Source: Callorhinchus milii
Lineage: Eukaryota
Assembly (NCBI RefSeq): GCF_018977255.1
Contig: NW_024704771.1
Coordinates: 2,046,001 to 2,110,000, forward strand
DNA: 64,000 nucleotides
Direction of reading: 5' to 3'
The position numbers and the translations under genes were made by a program. Of the stretch, positions 19,521-61,358 are shown piece by piece. The notes below the pieces were generated by a model. That model did not search any database. It saw only the letters and a list, made by a program, of their open reading frames with translations, and had not been told where the DNA came from. Within the stretch, counting starts at the first letter, position 1; every line of letters begins with the position of its first letter.

Positions 19521-19659
19521 CACAGCCTTTCTGCTGGATTCTGTTCCCAGGAGATGTCGATGTTTTACACAGAGGCTTATCTCCCGGTGACGACACTGAA
19601 GATCATCTTATTTATAATTGTAAATGTGTCTGACATTAATGGTCTGATTCTCTCTCTAG

Positions 19660-20180
19660 TTACAGTCACTCTGGATCCTGACACAGCCCATCCCCGGCTC
19701 ATCCTGTCTGAGGACCGGATCAGTGTGAGATATGGAAATGAATGGCAGCCACTTCCTGATTCCCCAAAGAGGTTTAGTGGATCTCGCTGTGTCCTGGGAT
19801 CTGAGGGCTTCACATCAGGGAGACATTACTGGGAGGTTCATGTGGGCAACAAGACAATGTGGATTGTGGGATTGGCCACAGAGTCTGTCAACAGGAAACA
19901 ACCAATCACATGGACACCAGAGGATGGGGTCTGGAGTGTGAGGCTGTGGGGTGGGGTCTATGAGGCTCTGACGTCACCCCCCACCCGCCTGCCCCTGACA
20001 GTGAGACCCGGGAAGGTCGGAGTGTTTCTGGACTATGAGGAGGGACAGGTGTCATTTTACAACGCTGACAACATGGCTCATCTCCACAATTTCACTGAAA
20101 CTTTCACTGGGAAACTTTTTCCTGTATTCCATCCCATGTTTGATTCTGAGCCTCTAACAATCTGCCCAGTGACAGGTTAA
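19660..20180 (+). CDS. Intact B30.2 (PRY-SPRY) terminal exon of butyrophilin type; no upstream BTN exons found in the window
   Basis: ctag|TT ACA GTC ACT CTG GAT CCT, i.e. [12 protein letters not shown]...GRHYWEV...[15 protein letters not shown]...TG*; closely paralogous to 45147-45655, including the upstream intron. Confidence 0.75.
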
Positions 20181-21768: not shown

Positions 21769-22024
21769 GGAGTCCTGTAGCTCAGTGGTTAGAGCACTCG
21801 CTTTGCAAGTGAGAGACCTGAGTTCAATTCCAGGCAGAGGGCGAAACCTTGGGCAAGTTTCCTTACTCCACACAGAGCCTAATAATAATCCCTCCAAAAC
21901 CAAAAACAATAATAAAATTGGTCATTTTCAATCTACGACTGTTTGTGGGACATTGCTGTGCGCAATTGACTGCCGCGTTCGCCCACAAATATACAGTTAA
22001 TTCACTTTACAGTGTGTTCTGTGT
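21769..22024 (+). mobile_element. Family A SINE, 3'-truncated, fused directly to a SPRY pseudo-exon
   Basis: Head ggagtcctgtagctcagtggttagagc; sequence switches to gggcttcacatcagggaggcattactgg (GFTSGRHYW) at ~22025. Confidence 0.85.
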
Positions 22025-23090: not shown

Positions 23091-24044
23091 AGACACACAC
23101 CTTAACCTGCACCCCGATACACATACCCTCAACACCCAATATACACACCCCTAACCCTTATCCCCTGATACACACAATAACAACAACAAATTACATTTAC
23201 ACAGTGCCTTTCACGTCAGGACGTCTCAAGGAGGTGTAATGTTAGGGATGCCCACCTGAGCTGGTGGTTGGGATCAGGAGGGGTGGAGGGCAGGTAGGGT
23301 AGGCGTAAGAGGGTAATTGAAGGAAAGATCGAAGAGGTGGGTCTAGAGATGGGTCTTGAAGGTAGCAAGGGAGGGGGTGTGGTGAGCAGCCTGAGGGATG
23401 GAGTTCAAGAGGGTGTAGGCAGAGAGGCTGAAGCCTGCTCACCAATTGTGCCCTCCTCGCAGGTCTCCCCAGCTCCCCATACAGAAATACAATTGATTCA
23501 AAATTCTGCCATCTGGATACTCATCCACACGAAACTCTGTACGCCCATCAAACCAGTCCTTGCCAGGCTCCACTTGGTCCCATTATAAAACAATAATATT
23601 CAAAAAATAAATAAAATAATAATCTGTTAAATCAATCCATGACTGTGGGACGATGCTGTATGCAATTGTTGGCTGTGTTTCGCCCTCAAAATATACAGTC
23701 AATACACTTTACAGTATATTCTGAGAGGCGCTTTGAGATGTCTCAACAACATGACAAGGCACTAGGATTTTTATGGTGTCCTGCAGCTCAGTGGTTAGAG
23801 CATTCACCTTGCAAGCGAGAGGACCTTGGTTTGATTCCCGGGCAGGGCAGATTTACTTACTCCACAAGATTATTTACCTAGCATTAAGTAACAACCTGGT
23901 TGTTAGTCGATTGGCAGATCACTTTCTGGCGTTATAAAATGATAATAATTTGGTCACTGAATCCATTTGACTGTTTGTAGGACACTGCTGTGCACAATTG
24001 GCTGCCGAGTTTCTTCCACGAACCACACATTCAACTCACTTTAC

Positions 24045-25293: not shown

Positions 25294-25477
25294 GGTGTGA
25301 TGACCACCCTCATGAAGAGGAACTCCACCAACCTAACCAAACAGACCCAGGGTTTCAACGCCTACTCCGACAACCAGCCCGGCATATTGGAGTAAGTGCA
25401 TGAGGGCAAGAGAGCAGTGACCAAGGACTAAAATCTCCTGGGCAAGTTCGAGATGAGTGGAATCCCCCCAGCTCCCC
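25294..25477 (+). pseudogene. Hsp70 fragment (substrate-binding domain, two in-frame stops)
   Basis: Ungapped match to 62574-62757; translates [59 protein letters not shown]. Confidence 0.93.
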
Positions 25478-25484
25478 AACCCTC

Positions 25485-26662
25485 TGATATACACACACCC
25501 CAAACCCTCACCCCATGATACACACACACCTAACCCTCACCCCGATACACACCCCTAACCCTCACCCCCTAACACACACCACCCTGCCCCTCACCCCGAC
25601 ACACACCCCCCTGCCCCTCACCGCGACACACACACCCCTAACCCTTACCCCGACACACATACCCCTAACCCTCACCTGATACACACACCCTTAACCCTCA
25701 CCCCGACACACACATCCCTAACCCTCACCCCCTGACACACACACCCCAAACCCTCACCCCCTGATACACACCCCTAACCCTCACCCCCTGACACACACAC
25801 CCCTAACCCTCACCCCCTGATACACACCCCTAACCCTCACCCCCTGACACACACCACCCTGCCCCTCACCCCGACACACACACCCCTAACCCTTACCCCG
25901 ACACACATACCCCTAACCCTCACCTGATACACACACCCTTAACCCTCACCCCGACACACACCCCTAACCCTCACCCCCTGACACACACACCCCAAACCCT
26001 CACCCCCTGATACACACCCCTAACCCTCACCCCCTGACACACAAACCCTAAACCTCACACCCCGACACACACACCCCTAACCTTCACCCCGAGACACATA
26101 CCCCTAACCCTCACCCCGACATACACACCCGACCCTCACCCCGACACACACACCCCTGACCCTCACCCCCTGACACACACACCCCTAACCCTCACCCCCT
26201 GACACACACACCCCTAACCCTCACCCCGACACACATCCCCTGACCCTCACCCCCTGACACACACACCCCTGACCCTCACCCCCTGACACACACACCCCTA
26301 ACCCTCACCCCCCGACACACACACCCCTAACCCTCACCCCGATACACACACCCCTGACCCTCACCCCCTGACACACACACCCCTGACCCTCACCCCGACA
26401 CACACACCTCTGACCCTCACCCCCTGACACACACAACCCTAACCCTCACCCCGACACATACACCCCTAACCCTCACCCCGACACACACACCCCAGACCCT
26501 CACCCCCTGACACACAAACCCCTGACCCTCACCCCGACACCCACACCCCTGACCCTCACCCCCTGACACACACACCCCTGACCCTCACCCCGACACACAC
26601 ACCCCTGACCCTCACCCCCTGACCCTCCCCCCCTGACCCTCACCCCCTGACCCTCACCCCCC
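25485..26662. repeat. Telomere-variant minisatellite (~26-28 nt: CCCTAA/CCCTGA + CCCTCA + cccc(t)ga(ca)n)
   Basis: More than 40 visible units, a ~248-nt higher-order duplication (anchor cccttaccccgacacacatac at 25642 and 25890), and a CCCTAA-to-CCCTGA gradient left to right. Confidence 0.9.
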
Positions 26663-26939
26663 GGGGCTCATGGCCACACGGCCGCCGAGTTGGGAATCTC
26701 GGTGTTGGTGTAGAAAACCCCTTTGATGTGAAACTGTTGATAGTCACAGATAATAATAATGTATTTAATGTCATTAAATACAATAAGTGATTTGATCTTC
26801 AATGGAAGGATTTCCCACTGAATATGTAATGTATATAACAGTATATGTGCCATTGCTGTTGACTATAGTGACTTTATACCATATTCTCACCAGTTGGGGC
26901 GGAGGTGTCAGAGGGACCGTCGCTCGAGCGCTTTTCTGC

Positions 26940-29881
26940 TTTTTTCGGCACTCAGACTAAGATTTTCGAACAGTATATGGTTCGGTACCTACGATTCATC
27001 ATAGTGCCGTGCCGAATCATAAACGTGCTCTTAAATTTGTAGCCTAATTGGAAGCCAAATTCGCACCTTTTTTATCCTGGAGGGCTTTAACCAGATACTA
27101 ACCGTGTCCTGGCATCGGGAGCTCCACATGGTTGTTTCCTTCCATGCTTCACCTTGTCCTGCGGGCTCCACGGTCCCCACGTCCCAAACGCTCCGTGCTT
27201 TTCCTAAATACCTTATAGGCATAATGAGTATACTCAAGCACCCGGAGAGATATTAATTCTAAGTCTCTTTTGGTCAAACCCAACTCCCCAAGGGATAAGA
27301 CAGATTTAGGGCACCATGCTCCCCTCCAATTGAGGGTTATTGAGGAGAACGTGGTGCCACTAGAATCAGGGAAGGTCTGGTTGACCCAACTCCTGATGGC
27401 GGGGGTATTATAATAGGTGACTTTATTACTATGGGCGGCATCCAGATTGGCATTGTCAGCCACTATTTGGCTGTCCAAGACCCATGTATAATGGTTCTTG
27501 TGGACTATTAAGTCCGGTTTACGTATGCCCGCTGGCGTGGGGATCGCGGGCTCCGATATTACTCGGAAGCCCCTTCTCCCCAGCTTTTGGGCTACGTACT
27601 TACAGACCTGGTCGTGTCTTCGCACACGAATGGAATGGGTGCGAAAGCACGACTGGGAGATGTGGGCTAGGGTTTCCCGGGAACTACACCCTCCGTCGCA
27701 CCAGGGATCGGCTTCACTCCTGCCCCTTGCACGGCGACTTGCCGTGGGGAGCAGGTTGCCACGGATCTGCACGCAGTCGATGTACGATCGACCGGTCAGG
27801 ACTCCCGAGCCCCCAGACACCCAATTTTGATATCCGGGGACTAAGTTGTTACTACTGAGCCCTTTCCCGTCGACAGACTGTTCGTGCAGTAACCGGGCCC
27901 AGATATTACGCGCCGACTTAGTGCAATGGAGAGTTTCGCCAGCGAAATTCCCCGCGCGTGTTCCGTCCAGAATTCGTTTCCGGAAGGAGGCGGTGTTTGT
28001 CGCCTCTCTAACTGCCGCCGAGCCGGATTGCAGTAGGTGGTTTAACCGATTGGTTGTTAGTACAGGAATGGAGGTTCTCAGGCATGGAATGCCCAGACCC
28101 CCGTCCTGTACCGCAGCATGAAAGTAACTCGTCGGCGTGTCCCTGGGCAGCCTTAACCACCTACGGACAGCCGCTCGAGTTTGCAGATCCATGGTCTTGA
28201 GGCGTTTACTTGTCCAACGTCCCAAAACTAAACGGTATTGCAATTTGGGAATAAGATGGTTGTTAAACATATAGATTCGCTGTTGTGGTTTTAGGGGAGC
28301 CCGGGACAGGTTCTGGATACCTTGTTCCAGAATCGATCCGACGGACTCACCCCTCCCCTGATGACGGAAATTTATTCCTAGATATTTAAAGTAATTTATT
28401 GCGGTTAATATATTGAGTGGCTGGTTTTTGACTGTAAATTTTTGTGTTGCATCGACGAGATAACGTTTGTGTTTCCCGTCGATGACAATAGATAACGAAT
28501 TTGATTTACTGGGATTAATTGCTAGCCCAATTTTATCCAAATTGTTGGTTACATGATTTAGGAGGGTCTGCAACCCTAAAGGTGTGGTTGCGAATAACAG
28601 GATGTCGTCCGCAAACACAACAGTCGGTATTTTGGTTTGGCCGCCCAGGCGAGCTCCGATTCCAGATGGTATAGTGTCGAGAATCTCGTCCAGGACGAGA
28701 TTGAAGAGAAACGGGGAGATTGGATCTCCCTGCCTCACCCCCCTCGTCATTGGGATCGGTTCGCCTGGGCAGCCTTTAATCGTAGTGAAGCAATTAGCAT
28801 AGGTTGATCCTATGTAATCGCTAAGGATCTTGGGGATACCCCGCAACTCCATGGCACGAAAGATCGAGCCATGGTTTACGGAATCAAACGCTTTGTGGGC
28901 ATCCAGCGAGGCGACACAGAGAGGCGACAAACTAGAGGTACTATATTGGAAAACGGAATCGAGGATGGTTGTGTTTTCTGCCGTTCCGTCACCCGAGCAG
29001 AACGCTCTTTGTGCGGAGTTAAATGGTACGCTCTGTGAGCATCTTTTTGCAATTATTCTATGAAATAGTCTAGTAACAGTGGACGAAACGGTTATGGGAC
29101 GGAATTGTCCTGCTTCGGTTGGGGACTTAACCTTGGGGATTAAGGTGGTTTGATTAGCCCTGAAGGGCAAGGGGAGGTAAGAGTAATTTAGCCATAAGTT
29201 GAACATTTTGCTCAGGTAACGGGACGGCAGAGATTTGAGGGTTCCAACGGTGATTCCGTCAGGACCGGGAGAGGAAACTGATATACTACGGACGCAGGTG
29301 CGGACCTCCTCCTCTCTAATCGGGAGCACAAGCTCCCAAATAGTGCGTTGGGGGTCCACAGGCCTGTCGTCAGAACAGGAGGGTTTATTAAAAATCTTAG
29401 CCCAATAACTGTAGGTGTCAGTGGGAAGGGACGAGGAAGTTTCCTCGGACCATGTCCCGTCCAGGCACATCTGGGCACATTTTCTACGGTTTTTTCTATA
29501 AATGTTTTGGATTCGTGCGTAGGCTTTCCGCCTAGCAGCCCTTTTCGCTCCGCTAGGCTTTTTATTGGGTTGAATTGGTTTATTACTGGCGGGGGGCCTC
29601 CCGCCCCCAACCTTCGGAATGCCTGGTGCGGCCAACCTGATTAGCTGCTCCGCATGTTTATTTAATAAAGACGTAATTATAGAGTGGGAATAAAGCCCAA
29701 TACACTTAATAATTTGGTTAACAGTTTCCTCTCCAGGGTCACCATTGCCCGGGGGTAGAGACCTTACATAATCAATGATTCCTTGACGGTGGTTCTCAGT
29801 GGCGTTCATGTCGACACTGGGACTCACCGTGTCAGGGATCGGGGGAGTTAAAGGGGTTTTTGGGGCAATGGGAACGAATCG
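26940..29881 (-). mobile_element. 5'-truncated R2-clade (RLE) non-LTR retrotransposon inserted outside rDNA
   Basis: R2-type ORF; ~200-nt 3' UTR ending ...GTGCCGAAAAAA on the minus strand (putative end); no 28S target sequence on either side; boundaries inferred from an imperfect direct repeat GCGCTT(TT)CTG at 26928-26938 and 29882-29890. Confidence 0.8.
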
Positions 29882-30055
29882 GCGCTTCTGGAATGTTCCC
29901 GCCCACCCCCCGCGCATGCGCACCTTCCCGAGTCTGGTCCCCGGCGGGAAAGCGCGGGACCGAGTGACGGTTGGAGACGGGACACAGCGCGCACGCGCGG
30001 GAAGGAGGGGCCGCGCGAGACGGAGACGGCGGGAACAGTGCGCATGTGCCGACAC
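27149..30055 (-). CDS. Uninterrupted ORF (968 aa; 886 aa from Met83 at 29809) encoding R2-like RT, CCHC knuckle and restriction-like endonuclease; no N-terminal zinc finger or Myb domain
   Basis: RKAYARIQNIYRKNRRKC, SPGPDG, FRPITV, LDAHKAFDSVNH, RGVRQGDPISPFLFN, FADD, YLG, APLKPQQR, RRWLRLP, GGLGIP, CDGGCSSRETLAHISQSC, RHD, RKPDLI...VLD...KVTYY. Confidence 0.9.
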   Translation of the reverse strand: MSAHAHCSRRLRLARPLLPARARCVPSPTVTRSRAFPPGTRLGKVRMRGGWAGTFQKRRFVPIAPKTPLTPPIPDTVSPSVDMNATENHRQGIIDYVRSLPPGNGDPGEETVNQIIKCIGLYSHSIITSLLNKHAEQLIRLAAPGIPKVGGGRPPASNKPIQPNKKPSGAKRAARRKAYARIQNIYRKNRRKCAQMCLDGTWSEETSSSLPTDTYSYWAKIFNKPSCSDDRPVDPQRTIWELVLPIREEEVRTCVRSISVSSPGPDGITVGTLKSLPSRYLSKMFNLWLNYSYLPLPFRANQTTLIPKVKSPTEAGQFRPITVSSTVTRLFHRIIAKRCSQSVPFNSAQRAFCSGDGTAENTTILDSVFQYSTSSLSPLCVASLDAHKAFDSVNHGSIFRAMELRGIPKILSDYIGSTYANCFTTIKGCPGEPIPMTRGVRQGDPISPFLFNLVLDEILDTIPSGIGARLGGQTKIPTVVFADDILLFATTPLGLQTLLNHVTNNLDKIGLAINPSKSNSLSIVIDGKHKRYLVDATQKFTVKNQPLNILTAINYFKYLGINFRHQGRGESVGSILEQGIQNLSRAPLKPQQRIYMFNNHLIPKLQYRLVLGRWTSKRLKTMDLQTRAAVRRWLRLPRDTPTSYFHAAVQDGGLGIPCLRTSIPVLTTNRLNHLLQSGSAAVREATNTASFRKRILDGTRAGNFAGETLHCTKSARNIWARLLHEQSVDGKGLSSNNLVPGYQNWVSGGSGVLTGRSYIDCVQIRGNLLPTASRRARGRSEADPWCDGGCSSRETLAHISQSCFRTHSIRVRRHDQVCKYVAQKLGRRGFRVISEPAIPTPAGIRKPDLIVHKNHYTWVLDSQIVADNANLDAAHSNKVTYYNTPAIRSWVNQTFPDSSGTTFSSITLNWRGAWCPKSVLSLGELGLTKRDLELISLRVLEYTHYAYKVFRKSTERLGRGDRGARRTR

Positions 30056-30300
30056 CGCGTGACAGCGCTTTGGGCGTCAGGACCCGAGAAGAGCGCGAGA
30101 GTCGGTAAGTGAGGAGCGGAGGACCGACCCCGCGCTCCCCCCCCGGACCCCAACACACACACACACAGTGACCGCACACCGACACCACACACTCCACACA
30201 CCGGTGGGAGCCGCTGAAGGCGGGAAACGGGGAAGAGAAGCCGCACAAAGGCTGTGGCACAACTCCACACACGCACTGTCCCATCGTTGGTCACTGCCGC
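29882..30300. promoter_or_regulatory. CpG-island promoter with HSE, E2F-like and NRF1 motifs and a + strand splice donor
   Basis: Perfect 3-unit HSE cTTCtgGAAtgTTCc 29885-29899; TTCCCGCC/GGCGGGAAA; GCGCATGCGC 29912-29921 and TGCGCATGTGC 30039-30049; CG|GTAAGT donor at 30105; very CpG-dense compared with the rest of the window. Confidence 0.7.
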
Positions 30301-30479
30301 TTATTAGGAGCCGCGGTCCTGGCGGTCATTTCAGGCTGAAGGCCTTCAGAGTAACCGAAGCTTTCCCGTTGCTCCTTCCTATCAAACACAAAGGTTGTTA
30401 TTGTGTTACCGCCCGCACCCACTTCAGAGAGGGGGTGGTGTTTGCCAGCAGTCGGCATCGCACCTGTGCTTCCTTCCCA

Positions 30480-31135
30480 CCGCACATCGATTCCCTGACC
30501 AGATCGCCGATATCCACCTCTGCCACATCGCCCTCCTCCATCTGTACCGCACATCTGACGCAGCTGAGTCCCTCCTCCACACCTTCATCACTTCCAAGCG
30601 GGTCTATTCTAATGGCCCTCTGATCTGCCCAACTCCACCGTACACACATACCATTTATTCAGACTCCCCTTCCCAGATACTCACCCCCACGAAACTCTGT
30701 ACCACACCAGTCCTCGCCAGGATCCACTGGCTCCCAACCACCGAATGGATTGATTTCAAGATCCTCTCATTTGTTTTCAAATAATTTCATTCCCGTGCAC
30801 TTCCCCACCTATCTGACCTGCTTACCCCACATTCCACCACCCACTGCCTTCGCTCGGCTGTCTCCAACCTATCTGTCCCATCGTGCGCTCCGTTCCCCCA
30901 TCAATGGCCGTGCCTTCAACCACTAGACTCTGGAACTCTCTCCCTCCATCCCTCCACCAGGCTCCCTCCCTCCCTCCCTCCCCACCTTGAAATCCCCCAC
31001 CTAAAAACGTTTCTTTTTGATCTTACTTTTGGTCACCTCCCCTCTCCCTTTCCCCCTGGCTCATTGTCAGACCCCGCCACTGTGCAGTGCTCTGGGATGC
31101 TGCACCGCATGAAGGTCACTACATCGAGTTGTTCT
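30480..31135 (+). mobile_element. L2 LINE 3' fragment
   Basis: HLCHIALLHL...ESLLHTFITSK...PVLARIHWLP...DFKIL, then an L2 tail. Confidence 0.8.
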
Positions 31136-32456: not shown

Positions 32457-32755
32457 GGAGTCCTGTAGCTCAGTGGTTAGAGCACTCATTTTGCAAGTGA
32501 GAGAGTTGGGTTCAATTCCCGGCAGAGTGAAACCTTGGGCAAGTTTCCTTACTCCACACGCCTGATAATAATCCCTCAAGAAAAAAATAATAATAAATTG
32601 GTCATTTTCAATCCACTACTGTTTGTGGGACACTGCTGTGCGCAATTGGCTGCTGCATTTCGCTCACAAATACATACAATCAATTCATTTTACAGTCTAT
32701 TCTGTGAAGCGCTTTGAGACGTCTAGAAGACGTGAAATGTAAGGATTATTATTAT
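32457..32755 (+). mobile_element. Full-length family A SINE
   Basis: Head, body and tail as at 2651. Confidence 0.85.
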
Positions 32756-33378: not shown

Positions 33379-36300
33379 ATGAGCTGGAAACACTGTATTC
33401 AGGTCCTATGGTTTGTGCTTCCCCTCTCACTAGCTGGTAAGGAAACACATTGAATCTCTTTGATTTCTGTTGGTGTTAAATTGCTGAAGGTAAATGGAGA
33501 ACCTTTCCAATCTGGTTTCTGCCCATGGTACAGGGTCACAGTTACAAATGACATTCTGTCTTTATGCGACCAGGACTCTCTATGTCTCCTCATCTTTCTT
33601 GATCTCTCCGTTGCCTTTCACACTGCTGACCACTCTATTCTTCTCCACTTCCTCTCCTGTCAGCTCCACCTTCATGACCTTGCCTGGTTCTGTTCTTACC
33701 TTTCCCATCATCTTCACTTTCACCAGTACAGAACCTTGGTTACCTGCGTCACCCTCAACTGTCTTTTATCATCCCACATTATCCATTCTGTCTTCCCCGC
33801 CTCCGCATTATTGCCCGGATCCATCACTATCTCTCTCCTCAGGCTGCTGAAACCTTCATCCATGCTTTCATTAGTCAAAAAAAATTCAGACACTCAATTC
33901 ATGACTAATTGTGGACAATGCTTTGCACACACTTGCCGTCTTTCGCCCACAAAATATACATTCACAGCGCTTTGCAGTATATCTTCTGAAGCTCTTTGAT
34001 ACATCTCTGCAACATGATAATCATAGAATCATCATAGAATTATACAGCCCAGAAGGTGGCTATTCGGCCCATCGTGTCTGTGTCGACTCTTTAAAAAGAG
34101 CTGTCCAAATCAACCCTACTCCCCTGCGCTCTCCCCATAGCCCTGCAAACTTGTCCTCTCCAAATAATTATCTATAAGGTGCCATTTTGAATGCAAGGAT
34201 TATTGATATCTCAGTGAGTGTCTATTGGCAGAGTTTGTCTGAGTCAGTGTGACTGAAAATCCTAACTGTATCCGTTGTTTGTTATTGAACAGAGAGATTC
34301 ACAGTCAGTGGCCCGGCCCTCCCTGTCCCAGCCATTGCTGGTTCGGATGTTGTCCTGGACTGTAAGTGTTCCACAGACCTGCCACGAGAGGGTGTGGAGG
34401 TGAGATGGTTCAGGACAAGGTATGAATCCCCTGTGTACTTATATAGTGAGGGACGTGATCACCTGGGGAAACAGGATGAAGCCTACAGACACAGAACAAT
34501 ACTGTTTGTAGAGGAGTTTATCAATGGCAATGTGTCTCTCAGACTGGAAGATGTGCGGGTGTCAGATAACGGAGAATACACGTGTTTGGTTAGCTACGCC
34601 AGATGGCATGAAGAGGCACTGATAGAGTTGAAAGTTATAGGTCAGTAATGTTTACAACTAATTTTATTTCATGTAAGCTGTGTGTACAAACATTATTTGT
34701 TAATGTTATGTTCAAAATACAATACTTTATATAAACAAGATATATTATATATTCTTTTGTGTAAATTCATTCAGACTGTTACAAACATACCTTCAGTAAA
34801 GTTACTGTAATGTCCCTGGTATAAATATTGTCTGATTCACATTTCCTTTTTCTTCCAGGCCTTGGCAGTCAGCCTTGGATTCATGTTGATGGGCAGCACA
34901 GTGATGGTGTGAGGCTGCTGTGTGTATCCAGTGGATGGTTCCCAGCACCAGAGGTTCTGTGGTTTGATGATCAGGGAAATAACTTAACAATACTTAGTCA
35001 CTGGACGGTTAGAGAGGATTCTAAAGGTCTCTTCTTTGTTAAAAGCCAAATAGAAATAATCCATTCAACCAACAAGATCAGGTGTCTGATTCATAGTTCA
35101 GAAAATGAACAAGAAGGAAAACTCCAAATCTCAGGTCAGTAAATTCACTGAATTGTTAATGATAATCTGATAAATATCTTGCAGCTTGTAAAACACATGA
35201 AGTGAAAACTAGATCAGTCTGGTGATACAGTCCATCTGATTTCATCCTTTCAAAATACCAAACTTCAACAATCTTCAACATCAACAACAAATTATATTTG
35301 TGAAATGCCTTTTATGTCGGGAGAACATCCCAATGTCAGAGGCACTATACAAAGGTGCTGGATATGCAAGGTTTTGGACTTGAGCTGGGATTGGGGTCAG
35401 GAGGCATGGAGAGCAGGGTGGTGGGAGTAGGAATGGGACCAAAGGCGAGGTCAAAGAGGTGGGTCTTGAAGGAGACAAGTAACTGCTCAAGATGGAGGGA
35501 CTGTGGAAGGAATTGGGGCAGAAATATGGAGTTAGCAAATTACAGAGATCAGGAGAAGCAGTACCATGGATATGTTTGAAGGCAATGAATCTTCTCATTA
35601 TAAATTGATACCAATTCTGAAATGACCTCAGCACTCCAGCTCACCCACCTTTCCTGCTAACCTATTCAAGCTGCTGATTACCTTGTGAATGAATCAATAC
35701 TTCGTAACTCACAGCCACCATTGCTTCAGAAAAGGCAAATGTTGCCTGATCCACCTCACAGTGAAGGGAAGACTCCAAATTAAGAGCTGAGAAGCTGCAG
35801 GACAGCAACAACAAATTACATTTTTAAAGCGCCTTTCACATTGGGAGGACATCAGGGAATTGGACCTGGGCTGGGGAATAGGACACAGTTACAGGACATC
35901 CACACAGAGGTAGCAGGACACATGTTCAGCATTCTGAAGATTGAGTTTAAGAACAGACATATACATTTTGGTCACCTTCTGATTATTTGCTTCTATTTAT
36001 TGTTTCCATTAATTTTCCACTCACTTATGTTCATGAGTTGCCAGGTATGGCTCTGTTATTACTGTTATGTTGGGCAGCACCTTCCAGTTTGATTACCACC
36101 AAAATGTGATCATTTAATACATTCGCTGTCTTATTTGTTCCAATGTGCTTTACACTTCTCTTTGGAGTCTCCAATTTGTTTTACTTGACAATAAATGTAA
36201 GAGGTTCCTCCAGAAATCACATTTGTAAACTGAAATAAAATAGACATTAGGAATGATTTCCTTTCCTCTGGCATGGCAATTCTATTTCAGAAATATTGCC

Positions 36301-39300
36301 GTTTACCCTCGTCTCAATAAACTTTCATGAACTCCTCACAATCTCTCTAGCTGATACCCCATTTTCTACCTGCCTTCCTTTGCAAGGTGCTGGGATGCAT
36401 TGTAGCTTCAAAGCCCCATTCCTTACTCTCCCATCATGTAAAGGTTTCTCCAAACTGGCTTCCTCCCTCCTAACAGCACCAAAACAGCCCTGGTCAAATT
36501 CACAGATGATGTTCTCTCTGTCTGTGACCAGGCTCCTCCCTGTGTCTCCTTGTCCTTCTCTATCTCTCACACTATTGACCACTTCTCCATGATTCACCTC
36601 ACAGCCTCTGAACTTTGCTGGTTTCATTCCTGTCTGTCTCAGCATCTCCACTTTATCTTACCAATGGCTTCACATCCTGCCCAGTATATTCACAGATGGT
36701 GTTCCTCAGAGCTCTATCTTTGTTCCTCCTTTTCCTTGTCCACATGTTCACCCTTGGAGTCTGGGTCTCAGGGACTGGGCTAACGAGACGGCCACAAAGA
36801 ATGGATTTTATTCTGACATTCCCTTACCAACCACAACACTTTGGTGCCACTTCAGCTCCAAGACCCCACTTCTCCCCCCAGTAAAAGTACATAATAATAA
36901 TAATAATCCTTGTATTTAATATAGAGCGTTATCACATCTTGAGGTGTCTCAAAGTGCTTCACAGAATATACTGTAAAGTAAATTGACTGTATATTTTGTG
37001 GGAGATACGTGGCAGCCAATTGAACACTGCAGCGTCCCACAAACAGCTGTGGGTTGAGTGACCAAATTATTATTATTATATTGTATTTTTCGATGGCATT
37101 ATTAGCCCCGGAAACCGATCTGCCAATCGACAAACAAGCAGATTCGTACTTACTGCTAGGTAAACAGAATCATGTGGAGTAAGGAAACTTGTCTAATGTT
37201 TCTCCCTGCACAGGAATTGAACCCTGGTCTTCTCGCATGCGAGGCGAGCACTCGATCCAATACACTACCAGGACTTTGAGTGAAGCCTGTGACAGCTACT
37301 GAGCTATTGTGTGTAATGCAGTCACTTGAGGGTAAATAAAGATATTTGTTGTTTGATATGAGAATAGATGTTTAAATGTCTATTTACATTTCTTGACAGA
37401 CGAGTTCTTTCCCAAAGTGCCAGTGGGTTTGGTGGTTTCCTCACTGCTCTTAGGACTTGCCATAATGATGCTGAGTGTTCTTGTCGGCTACAGTGTAAAA
37501 CAACACCGAGAGATCAAAGGTACGTTCCCATCAGTAACATCTCTCATCACAACACTGTTACTGTATGAATGTGTAAGTTCTATAAAACAATTGGTCTCTC
37601 CCTTCACTCAGCGACCCCGGTCTGTTTCATGCCACTGCCTGATCCTCCCCACCATCAGCAGGTCAGGCTTTCAGCCTCTCTGCCGCCACTCTCTGCAATT
37701 CAAGCCAAGAATCCTTCCGACTCGGCCCCTCCCTGCCTCCTTTCAAGGCCTGTATCATGACCTACATCATCCTGCGTTTTCAGTTCATTTTCCCCCTCTT
37801 CCACCCCACCCCGGCCCCCACCCCCAGCTCAGACCCCAGCATTGTCAGTGCTTTGGGATGTCCCCCGCTGTGGAAGGTGCTGTGTAAATGTAAATTTTAT
37901 TGCCCTTCAAACCTCCTGTGATTGTGTTGAGCTGCACTTTGTGTAGTTTCTAACTGTCAATGTTGTAAACATGTAGACTGACCATTAAATAATACTAAAT
38001 TCAGGATCGGTTTCTAACAGTTCTGTTTTGTATTCTCTAGATCTTGAGAAGAGAGTGGGTAAGTTATCAAAATAAAAACCTTATGTTGTAATTAACCTCA
38101 TTCACAAGCTTGATGCAAAGCAGACATAGTTTGCCAACAAAATACTAAGTCACTATACTCTCCAGTAAATCCTGTGAAGTGCTTATGAGGAATCAAATAC
38201 AAGGTTAATATAAGACAACAATGTGCACTTAAATAGTGCCCTCCACACAGTGTAGCGGCTCAGAGTGCTTAACAGTGGCAGAGACCGACTCCGAGATGGG
38301 GGTTGGTGGGGGGGGAGAAGGTGACCATAAGCATGGTCGAAAAGGAAGGTTTTCAGGTGGAGAGAGGGGGGCAAGGTGGAAGGATTGAGAGAGAATGTTC
38401 CAGAGTTTCGGGGCATAGTGGCTGATTACACGATTTCCAATGGTGGAACGGAGGCAGTAGACAGATAGATAGACAGGTATATGACGGATAGAGGTTTGAA
38501 GGGGTATAGAGATATGACAAGTGCAGCTGTTGTATGAACACCTTGCTCTGAGAGCCCATATAGACTCGATGGTGAATGGCCTACTTCTGGGTTGTAAATT
38601 TCAATGAATCTATTCCATGAATTATTACAGGCTGTTTAATTCGATCCACTGGTCTATTTCACATCTTTAACTTTCCCTTTTCTCAGACAGCATTGGCTTG
38701 TGAATACACACACATTTAGGGGGAGAGAGAATAAGTGAGGTTCAATGAGGGAGGATGGGGGGGGGTGCACGGGGAGGAATAGATAGAGGAAAGTAGAGAG
38801 AGAGGGAGGACATGAGAGAATGAGAGAGGGTTGGATTGATAGGAGAGCGGGAGTGAGAGAGGGCGGGCGGGCCCGGGGACCGGCGGGCCAGGGGGCGGGA
38901 GGCAGTGTGATTAGGTTAGAAGCTGCCAAAGGTCTGATCACTTCTTCCTTCTTGGTTCCAGGATTGAAAAGGATTTGCAAGTGTGCAGGTAAGAGTCTGA
39001 GTGACCAAACAACCAACATCCAACACACTGACTCCTTCTCCCTCCAAATACACTCACATCCCCCAACACACCATCACTGATATTCTCCACACACATTTCC
39101 CACCCGCCCACACATCCTCACACCCCCCCCACTCACACACCCCCATACACACAACTTGGACATTCCCCCATACACACACCCTCACATCCGCTTCCACACA
39201 CACCCTCACATCTCGCACACATCCGTGGCCCTACTCCCATCCCCACACAGAACCATCACAGCCCATCCTCCGCAAATGTACACATAGCCCACACACACAA

Positions 39301-42300
39301 AACCTCACACCACCCCCATACGCCCAACAACACATACATCCTCACACCCCACACACACCCACACAATCCCCTTGCATCCCCAGACACACACTGACACACA
39401 TCCTCATGCCCACCAACAAACACATCCTCTCACATGCCTCACATCCACACACACACTTCCCCTCACACCCTCACATCCCCCCTCACTTAAATACACTCAC
39501 ATCCCACCCCCACACCCACCCTCACCTCCCGCCCACACCCACCCTCACCTCCCCCCACCCTCACCTCCCCACCCTCACCTCCCCCCCCTCACCTCCCCAC
39601 CCTCACCTCCCCACCCTCACCTCCCCACCCTCACACCCACCCTCCCCCCCACACCCACCCTCACCTCCCCCCCACAACCACCCTCACCTCCCCCCCCACA
39701 CCCACCCTCACCTCCCCCCCACACCCACCCTCACCTCCCCCCACACACACCCTTACCTCCCACCACCACCAATCACAGTCTCACATCCCACACACCCGCA
39801 TACACAACCCCTCATACACTCACCCTCATATCCCGCTACACACACTACCACCCCCCCCACACAAACCCTCACACACACCCCAAAACATCAAATCCCCTCA
39901 CACATGCACAGCTTTATATCGCCCCATACACCTTGACATCACCCCCCACACACAGCCTCACATCCCCTCCACATGCGCTGACATGCCCACCCTACACACA
40001 CCCTCACATACTCCCCCCACACATACCTTTGCATTACCCCACACATCCTCACATACCACCCCTCACATACCTCCAAACAGACATCTTCACATCACATCCC
40101 TACACACCGTCACATCACCCCCAACACATAATGTCGCATAGCCCCCATTCACCCTCACATCACCCCCGCCGTACAAACCATCCATCGCTCCCCCACCCAC
40201 ACACACATTCACATCTCCCACACACATACCCCACAAACACCCTAACATTCCCCTGCCACATACACACCCTCATGTCCTCCACCCCCACATGCTCTCACAT
40301 ACACCCCCCACACACCCTTACGTCACCTCCAAAAACCCCCTCACATCTCCCCCCACACACACACACCCTCACAGAACCCCACACATTGGAGCAGTGAGGC
40401 AAGGCCAGAGTGAGAAGGAATTGGGTGATAGTGGGAATTAGGTGCAGAGGGGGAAGAATATCTTCTAAACAACAATAATACAGGGATAAATAGAGTGAGA
40501 GGAGAGAATGACCTGGCAGGTGATGTGTGAGGAATGTGGTATGTGGGAGTTGATGGAGGACAACCTGAGCCCGGGCGACTTCATCTGCAACAAATGTCTG
40601 CAACTGAGGAAGCTCCAGCTTAGAATAGCTGAGCTGGAGTCTCTGGTGGAGACAGTGCGCAGCATTAGAGATGGGGAGAGCTTCCTGGACAGTTTCATCC
40701 TGGAGCCAGACACTCCCACGAGTCCCAGGGAACATCCCGTTGCCAACCACAGACAGGACTGGGTGACGGTCAGACAGGCGCGTAAGAGGACCTGAAAGAG
40801 AGGGACAGAGGAACCCCAGGCTTTAATCTTGTCCAAAAGGTATGAAATACTTGCAACCTATGTGGACAAGGAAGTCTGTGAGGAAGATGGGCAAACTTAC
40901 CCCAACACCTCTATACAGGAGGCCACACTGGGAATAGTTAGAAGAAATATAGTGGTAATTGGGGATAAGACAGTCAGGAAGACTGACGCACTTTTCTGCA
41001 GCCGTAGCAGGGAGACAAGAAGTCTCTGTTGCCTTCCTGGGGCCAGGGTGAAGGACATCACTTCTGGGCTGGAGAAAAATTTGAAGCAGGAGGGAGTGGA
41101 TCCAATAGTTATGATTCACATAGGGACCAATGATGTAGGTAGGACAGGTAGGGACGAGTTGAGGAGCAAGTACCGGGAATTGGGAGTTAAGCTAAAGAGT
41201 GGAACTTCAAAGGTATTAATATTGAGATTATTACCTGAGCCGGGGGCAAATTAGTACAGGCAAAAAAAATTAAAGAACTGAATACCTGGCTAAAAGAATG
41301 GTGCGGAGGGCAGGGGTTTCACTTTATAGGCCACTGGCACCAGTATTGGGGGAGACAGGAGCTATTCCAAAGGAATGGACTCCACCTAAACAGGGCTGGG
41401 ACAAATGTCCTGGCAACATGAATAAATAGGGCGATAGACAGGGCTTTAAACTACTAAGGGGTGGGGGGGGGGGGGTAAATTCAATCACATGTAATCCGTC
41501 ACAATTAAAATTAGGACCGATGAAAGTGGGAGAGCAGATTAACCAGGGAGATGAGCAAAGTGTGTCAAGTGGAGAAAGGAAGCCCAGGGATAGGGTATTG
41601 GTGAATAGGACTAATAGCCCGAAGTCAGAATTACAAGCGCTATATCTGAAAGCGCGAAGCATTCGAAACAAGATAGATGAGTTAAATGCACAAATAGAAA
41701 CAAACGGGTACGATCTGGTAGCCATCACCGAGACATGGTTACAGGGAGATCAAGGGTGGGAGCTAAATATTCCAGGGTATGTGGCGTATAGAAAAAAATA
41801 GACAATGTGGTAAACGAGGAGGAGGGGGGTCCTGCTAATAAAGGTTGGGATAAAAACAGTAGAGAGGAAAGATTTTAAATCAGAAAAGCAGGAAGTAGAG
41901 TCAGTATGGGTAGAGGTACATAACAACAAGGGGCAGAAAACTCTAGTGGGAGTAGTTTATAGATCCCCAAACAGAAGTCACAGTATCACTCAAGGTATAG
42001 ATCAGGAAATTAGCAGAGGATGTAACAAAGGAAAAACATTAATTGTGGGTGATTTTAATCTGCACATAGATTGGGTTAACCAAATTGGGAAACGTATGAT
42101 AGAGGAAGAGTTTATAGAATGTATTAGGGATAATTATCTAGATCAGTATGCCGAGGAGCCAACCAGGGAACAGGCCATATTAGACCTTGTTTTGTGCAAT
42201 GAAGCAGAGCTGATCAGCAAACTGGAAATTAAGGCTCCTCTAGGGCAAAGTGATCATAATATGATGGAATTTAGCATTAAGTTAAAGAGAGAAGTAGTTA

Positions 42301-45300
42301 AGTCCAAAGCAAAGGTTTTAAATTTAAGTAGAGCCAATTTTGCTGGTATGAGAGAGGATTTAGCCAAAATAAACTGGGAAATTAGACTTAAGGATTTCAC
42401 AGTAGACCAGCATTTGCAGATGGTTAAGGGGTTAGTGCAAAATTCCCAGCGAGCACGTATTCCTTTGAGGAATAAGAATGCCACAGGAAAGGTGGCCCAA
42501 CTGTGGATAACTAGAGCAGTTAGGGAAACTATAAAGTTAAAGGAAGAAGCCTATAAAACAGCTAAGATGAGTAGTAAACCCGAGGATTGGGAGAACTTTA
42601 GGGATCAACAAAGGAGAACCAAAAAAGTGATTAAGAGGGAGAAAATGGAATATGAGGGTAAACTCACGAAGAACATAAAGACAGACTGTAAGAGTTTTTA
42701 TAAATATATAAAGAGGAAGAGGCTGTCAAAGGTAAATGTGGGTCCACTACAGGCAGAGACGTGGGGAATTATAGTAGGGGACAAAGACATGGCAGAGTCA
42801 TTAAACAAGTACTTTGCTACTGTCTTCACCTTAGAAGACACTGAAAACCTACCAAGAATAGAGGGGAACCAAGAAGACAATGTTAGCGAGCAACTTGGGG
42901 AATTAATATTAGTAAAGAAATGGTTTTAGGTAAATTGTCAGGTCTTAAAACTGATAAATCTCCTGGACCTGATGGCCTACATCCTAGGGTTTTAAAAGAG
43001 GTGGCTACTGAGATAGTGGATGGCTTGTCTTTGATCTTCCAAAATTCTCTGGATTCTGGAACGGTTCCCATTGATTGGAAGATTGCAAACGTAACACCAC
43101 TATTTAAGAAGGGTGGGAGAGAAAAGATGGGGAACTATAGACCAGTTAGTCTGACATCAGTGGTAGGGAAAATTCTTGAGTCCTTAATTAAGGATGTCGT
43201 TATGGGATTCCTGGAAGACCATAACAAGATTAGGCAGAGTCAACATGGCTTTACAAAAGGGAAGTCATGCTTAACTAATCTTTTAGAATTTTTTGAAGAT
43301 GTATCTAGCAGGTTAGATAGGGGGGAACCAGTAGATGTAGTATATTTAGATTTTAAAAAGGCATTTGACAAAGTGCCACACAAAAGGCTATTGCACAAGG
43401 TTAAGGCCCACAGGATTAATGGGAACATATTAGCATGGATTGAAGAGTGGCTAACGGGTAGAAAACAGAGAGTAGGGATAAACGGGTCATTCTCGAATTG
43501 GCAGGATGTGACTAGTGGAGTGCCACAAGGATCAGTGCTTGGGCCTCAGCTATTTACAATTTACATCAATGATCTGGACGAGGACATTGAATGTAACGTA
43601 TCTAAATTTGCGGATGACACTAAAGTAGGTGGGAGAGTAAGATCTGAGGATGATGCAAAAAGATTGCAACGGGATATAGAGAGGGGAGTGGGCGAGTAGG
43701 TGGCAGATGGAATTTAATGTGGGGAAGTGTGAAGTTATTCACCTCATTAGCAAAAATAGAAAAACAGATTATTTTCTAGAGGGGGAGAGATTAGATAGTG
43801 TTAGTGTTCAGAGGGATTTGGGTGTCCTTGTACACCAGTCTCAAAAAGTTAGTTTGCAGGTGCAGCAAGCAACTAAGAAGGCGAACGGCATGTTAGCGTT
43901 CATTGCAAAAGGTTTAGAGTACAAGAGTAGGGAAGTCTTGCTGCAACTGTATAGGGCCTTGGTGAGACCGCACCTAGAGTATTGTGTGCAGTTTTGGTCT
44001 CCTTATTTAAAAAAGGACATACTTGCCCTAGAGGGGGTGCAGCGTAGATTCACCAGGTTAGTTCCTGGGATGAGGGGACTGACCTATGAGGATAGGCTGA
44101 ATAAACGAGGGCTGTATTCTCTGGAGTACAGAAGAGTTAGGGGAGATCTTATTGAAACATAAGATTCTTAAAGGGCTGATAGACACTGAGGGTCTGTTTC
44201 TCCTGGTAGCAGAATCTATAACCAGGGGTCACAGTCTTAAAATTAAGGGTCAGCCTTTTAGAACAGAGTTGAGGAAACATTTCTTCACTCAGAGGGTAGT
44301 GAATTTATGGAATTCACTACCCCAGAAGGCTGTAGATGCTCAGTCCTTGAACATCTTCAAGGCTGAGACTGATAGATTTTTTAAAAAACAGATGCATTAG
44401 GGGATATGGGGATAGAGCAGGTCATTTGAGTTAGGTCTGAAGATCAGCCATGATCTTATCAAATGGCGGGGCAGACTCGAGGGGCCAAATGGCCTACTCC
44501 TGCTCCTAATTCTGATGTTCTTATGCCCTCACATCGCCGCTCCCACACACACACACCCTCACAACTCCCCCCCACACATACACTCTCACATCCCCCCCCC
44601 AAACAGTCACTCACCCCCACCACTCACCCTCACAGTCCCATGCACCTTCACATTGCCCCTACACCCTCATATCCAGACCCGCACACCCGCAGATCACCAC
44701 CCTCACACACTCACACATTCCACCCCCCCCACACACACCCTCACATCCCCCACCACACAAACCCTCACATTCCCACCACCCATACATTCCCATCCCCCTC
44801 ACACATCCCCACAGACACACCTTCACATCACCCTTTCCACACACACCATCTCATCCACCCACACACAGCCTCACCCACACGCTCAAGTTTCCACCCCCCA
44901 TATACCTTCACATCCCAAACACTCCCATCTCCTACTCCTCACATCTCCGCAATACACACACTCACTTCCACCTCCCACACACACACTCACTTCCACCTCC
45001 CCACCTCACACAGATTTTATGCTGGATTCTGTTCACAGGACATGTCGATGCTTACACAAAGGCTTCTCTCCCGGTGACGACGCTGAAGATCAACTTATTC
45101 ATAATTGTAAATGTATCTGACATTAATGGTCTGATTCTCTCTCCAGTTACAGTCACTCTGGATCCTGACACAGCCCATCCCCGACTCATCCTGTCTGAGG
45201 ACAGGACCAGTGTGAGATACGGAGACGAACAGCAGCCGCTCCCTGACTCTCCAAAGAGGTTTAGTAAATCTCTCATTGTCCTGGGATCTGAGGGCTTCAC

Positions 45301-45655
45301 ATCAGGGAGACATTACTGGGAGGTACAAGGGGGTAACAAGAGGTGGATTGTGGGATTGGCCACAGAGTCTGTCAACAGGAAACAACCAATCAGATGGTCA
45401 CCAGAGAGTGGGTTCTGGGGGGTGTGGCTGAGGGCTGGGGTCTATGAGGCTCTGACGTCACCCCCCACCCCCCTGCCCCTGATAGTGGGACCCGAGAAGT
45501 TTGGAGTTTACCTGGACTATGAGGGGGGACAGGTGTCATTTTACAATGCTGACAACATGGCTCATCTCCACACTTTCACCCAAACTTTCACTGAGAAACT
45601 TTATCCTCTGTTCAGTCCCATGTTTGATTCTGAGCCTCTGACAATCTGCCGGTGA
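33379..45655 (+). CDS. Butyrophilin-like gene 1 (SP-IgV-IgC-TM-mini-exons-B30.2), 451 aa; exons 33379-33436, 34293-34640, 34859-35134, 37400-37519, 38041-38058, 38962-38988, 45147-45655
   Basis: All junctions are GT-AG and phase 1; signal peptide [19 protein letters not shown]; 348-nt IgV (C...WFR...DNGEYTC); IgC ([16 protein letters not shown]); TM; 18-nt and 27-nt cytoplasmic exons; B30.2. The CDS sums to 1356 nt with no internal stop. Confidence 0.92.
36892..37275 (-). mobile_element. Full-length family A SINE in a BTN gene 1 intron
   Basis: Reverse-complement tail, body and head. Confidence 0.8.
39030..45015. repeat. CA/C-rich low-complexity tract (39030-40385 and 44525-45015) split by the CR1 insertion
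   Basis: Irregular cacaccctcacatcccc and ccctcacctcccc units on both sides of the CR1. Confidence 0.85.
40390..44525 (+). mobile_element. Near-full-length degenerate CR1 LINE (ORF1 zinc finger + SGNH esterase-like; ORF2 APE-RT) in the last intron of BTN gene 1
   Basis: ORF1 CEECGMWE...[41 protein letters not shown]; ORF2 [50 protein letters not shown]-region, [12 protein letters not shown]; split by stops and frameshifts. Confidence 0.93.
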
Positions 45656-57200: not shown

Positions 57201-57485
57201 CCCATCACAGAGGGTGGAGTCTGGTGTGTGTGTCTGATGGGTGTGGTCTATTATGCTCTGACCTCCCATCGTACCTGTCTGACCCCGAGAGAGAGACCCG
57301 GGAAGGTCGGAGTGTTCCTGGACTATGAGGGGGGACAGGTGTCATTTTACAACGCTGACAACATGGCTCATCTCCACACTTTCACCCAAACTTTCACTGA
57401 GAAACTTTATCCTCTGTTCAGTCCCTGGTATAATGAGGACGGAGGAAACTCTGAGCCGCTGACAATCTGCTCAGTGAGAGCTTAA
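51275..57485 (+). CDS. Butyrophilin-like gene 2 lacking IgC (SP-IgV-TM-mini-exons-B30.2), 365 aa; exons 51275-51332, 52144-52491, 52879-52998, 54026-54043, 55739-55765, 56959-57485
   Basis: All junctions are GT-AG and phase 1; exons paralogous to gene 1; 27-nt exon ERRKFTPYA; the CDS sums to 1098 nt with no internal stop. Confidence 0.88.
52557..52640 (+). pseudogene. Remnant of the IgC exon in BTN gene 2
   Basis: Reads [25 protein letters not shown] versus [25 protein letters not shown] in gene 1 (34980-35060); no acceptor or donor retained. Confidence 0.88.
53591..53956 (-). mobile_element. Full-length family A SINE
   Basis: Reverse-complement tail, body and head. Confidence 0.85.
55139..55510 (+). 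mobile_element. Full-length family A SINE
   Basis: Head ggagtcctgtagctcagtg, body and tail. Confidence 0.85.
55958..56356 (+). mobile_element. Second SINE family (Deu-domain, SacSINE1/AmnSINE1-like)
   Basis: tcagccgggctcagtggg...ctcgcctctgagtcaga head; central gatgttaaaccgaggtcctgtctgcc...taaagatcccgtggca resembles the DeuSINE domain as I recall it; fragments also at ~12885-13110 and 52730-52840. Confidence 0.65.
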
Positions 57486-61170: not shown

Positions 61171-61358
61171 AGAGAGACCGAGAGACTGAGAGAGAGACTG
61201 AGAGTGAGACAGAGAGAGAGAGAGGAGAGAGAACGAGAGAGAGAGAGAGACAGAGAGAAAGAAGACACAGAGAGAAAAATTTCTTCGCAGTGACTCCACC
61301 ACAAGATCCACTGCCATTGGGACAGCGATTCAGAGTCCGAGTCACTGACTGCAGGACA

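Follow-up and report, generated by a model that had tools for sequence, protein, structure and literature searches.

A probable off-target, 5′-truncated copy of a lineage-D R2 retrotransposon outside the rDNA of the elephant shark

How does an intact R2 reading frame come to lie outside the rDNA of the elephant shark, Callorhinchus milii, and does it represent a stray copy, an R2 lineage with another target, or a host gene? The window analyzed here is a 64-kb stretch of C. milii DNA, the minus strand of which holds a stop-free open reading frame (ORF) of 968 codons (27149..30055). Its origin is borne out by the HSP70 gene in the window, the product of which is 100% identical to a C. milii protein. 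An earlier note on the same DNA, made from the letters only, had proposed all three possibilities and taken a recent, off-target, 5′-truncated insertion to be the simplest. The features on which our answer depends are collected in Table 1.

TABLE 1 Features of the R2 copy and its upstream flank, in coordinates of the window
Feature	Position	Strand	Remarks
R2 3′ untranslated region (3′ UTR), provisional 3′ boundary	26940..27148	-	209 nt, ends in A6
R2-derived part of the ORF	27149..29872	-	Residues 62-968 plus stop; aligns to R2-1_HCol and R2Bm
Restriction-like endonuclease core	27422..27520	-	K846-P-D848 ... D861 ... D867 ... K878
CCHC zinc knuckle, CDGGCSSRETLAHISQSC	27647..27700	-	Residues 786-803
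Reverse transcriptase (RT) domain	28370..29137	-	Residues 307-562; Pfam RVT_1, E = 1.9e-32, 113 bits
ORF codons 1-61, read-through of the flank	29873..30055	-	Not R2; contains in-frame Met47
CpG island directly next to the 5′ truncation point, putative promoter	29873..30300	.	GC 0.675, CpG o/e 1.05

The R2 portion of the ORF consists of 907 intact codons, which encode, in order, a post-Myb spacer, an N-terminal extension, the RT (with its FADD motif at ORF residues 481-484), a thumb/linker, the CCHC knuckle, and the restriction-like endonuclease. All of the columns that are invariant in an alignment with 11 R2 proteins are also present in the window ORF; these include C786, C790, H798, and C803 of the knuckle and P847, D848, D861, D867, and K878 of the endonuclease, which align to the R2Bm endonuclease. 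When solved structures were searched, the top match was R2Bm of Bombyx mori (PDB 8gh6; E = 3.5e-141, query residues 170-960 versus R2Bm residues 305-1112); lineage-A R2s scored about 1e-79 and L1 ORF2p about 1e-20. The Pfam search of the ORF gave no APE endonuclease (Exo_endo_phos). Judged by these alignments, the locus can be assigned to the R2 clade, being a single ORF with a predicted R2-type RT and, toward the C terminus, a predicted CCHC knuckle and PD-(D/E)xK restriction-like endonuclease. The RT motifs, knuckle, and PD..D..K residues that the earlier note had read in the frame were thus all recovered.

The closest relative of the window copy is R2-1_HCol, a lineage-D element with one zinc finger and a Myb domain that occupies the canonical 28S site of another chimaera, the ratfish Hydrolagus colliei (supplementary file 16 of PMC13188248). 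Its flank is canonical 28S (TAGCCAAATGCC...), and its C2H2 finger lies at residues 27-51 (Pfam). In a comparison covering the first 400 residues of R2-1_HCol, tblastn aligned residues 144-399, a stretch that takes in the poorly conserved post-Myb spacer, to window positions 29872 to 29129 with 64% identity and 77% positives (E = 2e-100). The next-closest protein, P0001, is 42% identical to the window copy and sits directly behind 28S; the ZF-Myb modules of P0001 and R2-1_HCol share 46% identity. Searches for closer relatives or further copies among 5.8 billion proteins, followed by 1.84 billion cluster representatives, gave nothing better than this 42% match, and, R2-1_HCol aside, no protein among 15 billion exceeds 42% identity.

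Homology to R2-1_HCol begins abruptly, at HCol residue 144, which corresponds to window position 29,872 and ORF residue 62 and lies immediately past the expected position of the Myb domain. No frame of the window encodes anything like HCol residues 1-143 (the ZF and Myb), and tblastn with ZF/Myb-bearing relatives found no C2H2 finger or Myb encoded upstream in any frame. Residues 1-170 of the ORF had no Pfam match even at E ≤ 10, and the read-through codons resemble neither HCol residues 1-143 nor any ZF/Myb. The lack of both domains, which had been noted before, was therefore confirmed. Because the homology starts at HCol residue 144 and everything before it is missing, the copy is best described, on alignment, as a 5′-truncated R2 of 2.93 kb. 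It lacks the N-terminal ZF and Myb of lineage-D R2s, and both are present in HCol and P0001; thus, it is a truncated derivative rather than a complete member. The comparison with R2Bm, the archetypal D-clade R2 (PDB 8gh6 and 8ibw), is similar: the two share their order of domains, N-terminal extension through endonuclease, but nothing in the window corresponds to R2Bm residues 1-304 (ZF and Myb), and R2Bm is 28S specific. Truncation at the 5′ end is inherent in R2 insertion (PMC13580325; PMC11204384). An Rfam E-value scan of positions 26600-30500 found nothing relevant to an HDV-like ribozyme 5′ UTR, which is expected because the 5′ end is lost; Rfam may also have no model for this lineage.

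Three other interpretations of the 5′ region were rejected. A possible host exon-1 splice donor, ACG|GTGAGT at about 29,828, lies inside R2 coding sequence (P-D-T-V-S-P-S) according to the HCol alignment, which also places "tccctgacac," a candidate target-site duplication, within R2 coding sequence. A chimera formed at the 5′ junction through a template jump to another RNA was discarded because the flank has no match among known RNA families.

The ORF ends with a stop codon at 27149-27151, followed by the 3′ UTR. The fold of the 3′ UTR is modestly structured (z = -1.7), with the last helix closing directly before the A-run. It has no similarity to the 3′ UTR of R2-1_CMi, which was curated from 28S and is the only C. 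milii R2 listed in a 2026 survey (PMC13188248); the "...GCCGAA..AAAA" ending common to the two was considered as a 3′-end marker but is too short to count. R2-1_CMi shares the host and the superfamily with the window copy, but where the two overlap, in the N-terminal/RT region, their identity is only 29%, and R2-1_CMi has lineage-A-type motifs. These differences, together with the unrelated 3′ UTRs, indicate that the window copy belongs to a second R2 lineage in C. milii.

In agreement with the earlier note, neither end of the copy adjoins 28S sequence. The window is free of rRNA, LSU rRNA included, and the 28S target TAGCCAAATGCCTCGTCATC has no match in the window with ≤3 mismatches. The likeness of the flanks to 28S does not exceed that of random segments (best P value of 0.04 among five tests), and the conserved insertion site of 28S-resident elements (...TTAAGG^TAGCCAAATGCC...) is absent. 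Both insertion junctions are in unique sequence. No target-site duplication or microhomology was evident, the likeness of one flank to the other being not above chance. The insertion site is intergenic and borders a CpG island, and the copy runs antisense to neighboring butyrophilin-like genes.

The insertion looks very young from its CpG content and the integrity of its ORF. The CpG o/e is 0.885 for the element and 0.99 for its 3′ UTR, versus 0.18 for the adjacent 200-bp flank, 0.30 for a broken CR1-like element, and 0.27 to 0.47 for bulk sequence. In simulations of neutral decay, the probability that the ORF would stay open was 0.15 to 0.21 at 0.5% divergence, 0.02 to 0.04 at 1%, and about 0.001 at 2%. 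The high CpG content could instead reflect germ line hypomethylation beside the CpG island, and an intact ORF is equally a product expected of selection. C. milii evolves slowly, so that a divergence of ≤1% may still mean millions of years. The remaining transposon ORFs in the window are fragmentary, and the earlier statement that every one of them is broken stands: the EN/RT of the CR1-like element is split over frames (41946-43699), and LTR-type pol is in pieces (7.7 to 9.4 kb).

Taken with the abrupt start relative to a 28S-resident chimaera R2 that has both ZF and Myb, the CpG content and ORF integrity support the simplest of the earlier readings. Very probably, the locus is a recent, off-target, 5′-truncated insertion that was dead on arrival and derives from a lineage-D R2 whose native site is the 28S rDNA of chimaeras. 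R2 RNA from a full-length, rDNA-resident master would have been reverse transcribed from its 3′ end at a nick or break outside 28S; cDNA synthesis, or joining to the upstream DNA, would have halted before the 5′ end was reached, leaving out the 5′ UTR and about 430 coding bases, and the upstream junction would have been sealed via end joining. We infer the source element, since R2-1_CMi, which is lineage-A-like, is the only R2 that the survey lists for C. milii. RT, knuckle, and endonuclease would be intact only because the copy is too young to have decayed. Having lost the ZF/Myb module, any ribozyme along with the 5′ UTR, and the rDNA/Pol I context, the copy is not expected to be autonomous or site specific. 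There is a precedent in the extra-rDNA R2 copies of five Drosophila species (Stage and Eickbush 2009, PMC2718515), which likewise lie outside 28S, are frequently incomplete, and make no contribution to the active rDNA population; those copies, however, are in insects and are 1 to 2% diverged from rDNA copies, whereas ours is in a cartilaginous fish.

It is unlikely that the copy belongs instead to a retargeted or non-sequence-specific chimaera R2 lineage, as one of many dispersed non-rDNA copies like those of R2NS-1_SMed and R2NS-1_CSi. Neither flank is 28S, the R2s so far documented in the 28S of C. milii do not include one of lineage D, specificity has been lost independently in R2 lineages (PMC5035012), and sponges have non-site-specific R2 homologues (PMC13188248). 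The R2NS families are also R2-clade elements at non-rDNA sites, but they are multicopy and defined by consensus sequences with many flanks (PMC5035012), whereas the 64-kb window holds a single, truncated R2 copy the nearest relative of which occupies the canonical 28S site. Moreover, the homology to HCol starts in midprotein, as a truncation would give, and, without the N-terminal DNA-binding module and the 5′ UTR, the window copy cannot itself represent an autonomous family.

We consider it quite improbable that the locus is a co-opted, expressed gene, that is, a ZF/Myb-less RT-endonuclease under selection and translated from Met47 or Met83 of a divergent CpG-island transcript, possibly heat inducible through a heat shock element (HSE). 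The intact R2 ORF does abut a CpG island, in-frame ATGs are present, and CpG-island promoters are commonly bidirectional. The island contains a perfect HSE-like motif, GAAnnTTCnnGAA, composed of a trimer, at 29886-29898 and a GCGCATGCGC palindrome at 29912-29921. The earlier note had described the frame as open into this island and in frame with a CpG/HSE promoter. The frame is indeed open, but the R2-derived sequence ends at about 29,872 and not at 30,055. All three minus-strand frames are open in the flank, and that of R2 is the shortest (68 codons versus 139 and 142), so that being in frame with the promoter is an effect of GC composition, from which an open R2 frame through the flank has a probability of about 0.34. 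Likewise, the island and the perfect motif exist, but the number of HSE motifs in the window is not above chance (2 versus 0.65 expected; 12% of shuffles reach 2). Met83 (29809-29807) would give the 886-amino-acid product proposed for it; there is, however, an earlier in-frame ATG in the flank (Met47, at 29917-29915), and an out-of-frame ATG near 30,047 opens a 65-codon upstream ORF ahead of Met83. The island more plausibly belongs to the plus-strand butyrophilin-like gene than to the R2 ORF. CpGs are undepleted even in the noncoding 3′ UTR, which fits youth and not long-term selection at the protein level, and no annotated protein in NCBI-derived or other collections is identical or close to the ORF. 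It is very doubtful that the CpG-island promoter drives an upstream antisense RNA of the ORF and that the encoded protein carries out target-primed reverse transcription without 28S specificity; were this so, the locus would either give rise to untargeted insertions or be a vertebrate gene at an early stage of co-option.

rDNA and R2 are notoriously misassembled (PMC13188248; PMC13580325) and the copy has no target-site duplication or other insertion signature, but it is scarcely probable that R2-containing rDNA reads were wrongly joined to a unique region, with junctions absent in the animal, because such a chimeric join would normally carry 28S at its 3′ junction, where there is none, both junctions are in unique sequence, and a 5′ truncation with a clean reading frame resembles a genuine insertion.

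In itself, this is most likely an ordinary dead-on-arrival retrotransposon copy. Its sequence suggests that the elephant shark carries, or very recently carried, an active lineage-D R2 family related to R2-1_HCol and separate from the catalogued lineage-A-type R2-1_CMi, which would add to the instances of a vertebrate with two coexisting R2 lineages. The locus would also be a clean vertebrate example of an off-target R2 landing, and with its enzymatic core intact, the copy, as a near-consensus template, could help to recover the element at full length.

The flanking HSE and CpG island were also considered as a second HSP70 promoter, which was rejected because the flanks have no homology to the HSP70 locus at 60 to 63 kb. 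The sole other HSP70 piece in the window is on the opposite strand, at 25294-25479.

An ORF scan of the window gave a stop-free frame of 968 codons on the minus strand (30055 to 27149). Pfam found a single domain in it, RVT_1 (residues 307-562, E 1.9e-32), and its top match among all solved structures was the Bombyx mori R2 protein, R2Bm (8gh6, 8ibw; E 3.5e-141), with query residues 170-960 paired with R2Bm 305-1112. Zebra finch R2Tg and other lineage-A R2 proteins reached only about 1e-79 in the same collection, and L1 ORF2p about 1e-20. With invariant R2 residues also in place (see the table), the earlier note's reading of the coding content (RT motifs, CCHC knuckle and PD..D..K residues) was correct.

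Positions of features in the ORF and in the surrounding sequence
Feature	Position	Strand	Basis or detail
FADD catalytic box	ORF residues 481-484	-	invariant columns, alignment with eleven R2 proteins
CCHC knuckle	ORF residues 786-803	-	invariant columns, same alignment
Endonuclease residues	K-P-D848, D861, D867, K878	-	invariant columns, same alignment
Butyrophilin-like IgV exon	34394-34648	+	
Butyrophilin-like BTN3A2-like Ig-C exon	34828-35142	+	E 5.8e-21
Butyrophilin-like hydrophobic transmembrane-like segment	37393-37887	+	
Butyrophilin-like PRY/SPRY exon	45074-45655	+	
Further PRY/SPRY exons	19554-20180, 56916-57485	+	
Intronless HSP70 gene	61290-63263	+	100% identity over 587 residues to P0082
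Masked run of 137 N	61361-61497		within 5' part of HSP70 reading frame
Isolated HSP70 fragment	25294-25479	+	62 codons, 74% identical to intact HSP70 residues 429-490
CR1/L2-like LINE	41946-43699	+	endonuclease (Exo_endo_phos_2) and RT divided between two frames
tRNA(-Ala) calls (seven)	3753-3824, 21772-21842, 23778-23849, 32459-32530, 37202-37273, 53885-53956, 55144-55211		Rfam or ARAGORN
Minisatellite (1.17 kb)	25491-26662		+ C-rich, - G-rich
Related arrays	about 39.3-39.9 kb and 18.5-18.8 kb		

No protein more than 42% identical to the ORF was found in very large protein collections. The top match there (P0001, 42%) has a zinc finger (ZF) and a Myb domain and sits directly behind 28S rRNA. 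The first chondrichthyan R2s were described in a 2026 R2 survey, whose supplementary table has two chimaera elements (PMC13188248). R2-1_CMi, which was curated from C. milii 28S, belongs to a different lineage: its motifs are of the lineage-A type, and it shares only 29% identity with the window ORF. R2-1_HCol, a lineage-D R2 from the ratfish Hydrolagus colliei, is bordered by canonical 28S (…TAGCCAAATGCC); its residues 27-51 form a C2H2 finger, and its Myb module shares 46% identity with the one in P0001. R2-1_HCol residues 144-399 match the window ORF (29872→29129; E 2e-100), with 64% of positions identical and 77% positive; over this span all other homologues gave less coverage and at most 43% identity. 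Modestly new is that, besides the catalogued R2-1_CMi, the elephant shark has or until recently had an active R2 of lineage D.

R2-1_HCol residues 1-143 (ZF, Myb and spacer start) had no counterpart in any frame of the window, in agreement with the earlier note, which saw no ZF or Myb domain before the RT. Because homology starts at residue 144, the R2-derived sequence spans 26,940-29,872 (about 2.93 kb). The copy is 5' truncated roughly 30 codons past the Myb position, with at least 143 codons and the entire 5' UTR missing; consistent with a lost 5' UTR, neither an HDV-like ribozyme nor any other RNA family was detected at the copy. Provisionally, the 3' end is put at 26,940, where an A6 run stops; just ahead of this run, the 3' UTR is predicted to close a helix. 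As had been claimed, neither end carries 28S sequence: the 20-nt target had no match in the window with up to three mismatches allowed, and five comparisons showed the flanks to be no more like the target than chance would have them (best p = 0.04). Nor does any target-site duplication stand out at the flanks.

CpG o/e is 0.885 in the R2 element and 0.99 in its non-coding 3' UTR; it is 0.18 in the 200 bp immediately past the 3' end, 0.27-0.47 in bulk sequence and 0.30 in the broken CR1/L2-like LINE, our yardstick for an old TE. In a simple neutral-decay simulation of the 2,724-bp ORF, which combined substitutions with 10% indels and was run both with CpG hypermutability and without it, the probability that the ORF stayed open was 0.15-0.21 at 0.5% divergence, 0.02-0.04 at 1%, and about 0.001 at 2%. 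Together, these results indicate that the insertion is very recent. Alternatively, the nearby CpG island could have protected the CpGs of the copy.

Given homology from residue 144, non-28S flanks and signs of youth, the copy most probably arose when an R2 transcript of a lineage-D family that resides in chimaera rDNA recently inserted at an ectopic site, as in the earlier note's off-target, 5'-truncated option. That transcript would have been reverse transcribed by target priming at a non-28S nick or break, cDNA synthesis would have been incomplete, and the upstream side would then have been sealed by end-joining. Truncation at the 5' end is among the outcomes inherent in R2 insertion (PMC13580325; PMC11204384), and five Drosophila species are documented to have incomplete R2 copies outside their rDNA (PMC2718515). 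Target-site binding is reported to need the Myb domain (PMC11204384), which is missing here, so any protein from the copy would be without site recognition; the copy is also without a 5' UTR and Pol I co-transcription context. With the closest relative, R2-1_HCol, sited at 28S, a non-specific R2 lineage is improbable.

More doubtful still is an expressed or co-opted gene, which the earlier note had tied to a possibly heat-inducible promoter in frame with the ORF. The undepleted CpG of the untranslated 3' UTR argues for youth rather than long-term protein selection. ORF codons 1-61 (29873-30055) are flank sequence, not R2, and stop codons are few there because of the composition of the CpG island (29873-30300; GC 0.675, CpG o/e 1.05). 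The R2 frame is open for 68 codons into the flank until it meets a stop, the two other frames of the minus strand for 139 and 142, and composition alone gives 61 open codons with P of about 0.34; the in-frame link to the promoter is put down to GC composition. The reported HSE motif (GAACATTCCAGAA, 29886-29898) is indeed there, 14 bp away from the first codon of R2, but two such motifs in 64 kb, versus 0.65 expected, are reached by 12% of shuffles. Met83, the proposed start, is preceded in frame by Met47, whose ATG lies in a GCGCATGCGC palindrome (29912-29921), and a 65-codon uORF from an out-of-frame upstream ATG stops ahead of Met83. The open frame, HSE, palindrome and ATGs near the R2 5' end are no evidence of function. 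Judging from downstream plus-strand exons, the island may be the promoter of a butyrophilin-like gene; a GTAAGT just within it (30105-30110, +; …GAGAGTCG|GTAAGTGAGG) could, by its motif, end a non-coding first exon of that gene. Misassembly is the least probable reading.

No rRNA was found in the window. Two of the tandem butyrophilin-like genes to which the tabulated exons belong flank the R2 copy, which is antisense to them; the butyrophilin-like genes and HSP70 within 64 kb look like an elephant shark neighbourhood of the MHC-paralogous type. The HSP70 comparison, with the C. milii "heat shock 70 kDa protein 1B-like" (P0082), was based on 61500-63260 only and marks the window as elephant shark DNA. 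The isolated HSP70 fragment, probably a pseudogene remnant, directly adjoins the minisatellite. The remaining transposon ORFs are fragments, as the earlier note had said. All seven tRNA(-Ala) calls share about 60 nt conserved past the tRNA 3' end (GAAACCTTGGGCAAGTTTCCTTACTCCACA...), which rules out tRNA genes and identifies them as heads of a tRNA-Ala-derived SINE family. The strand-asymmetric minisatellite begins about 280 bp past the R2 3' end and has about 42 copies of a 27-29 nt unit (ACACACACCCCTAACCCTCACCCCCTGAC).
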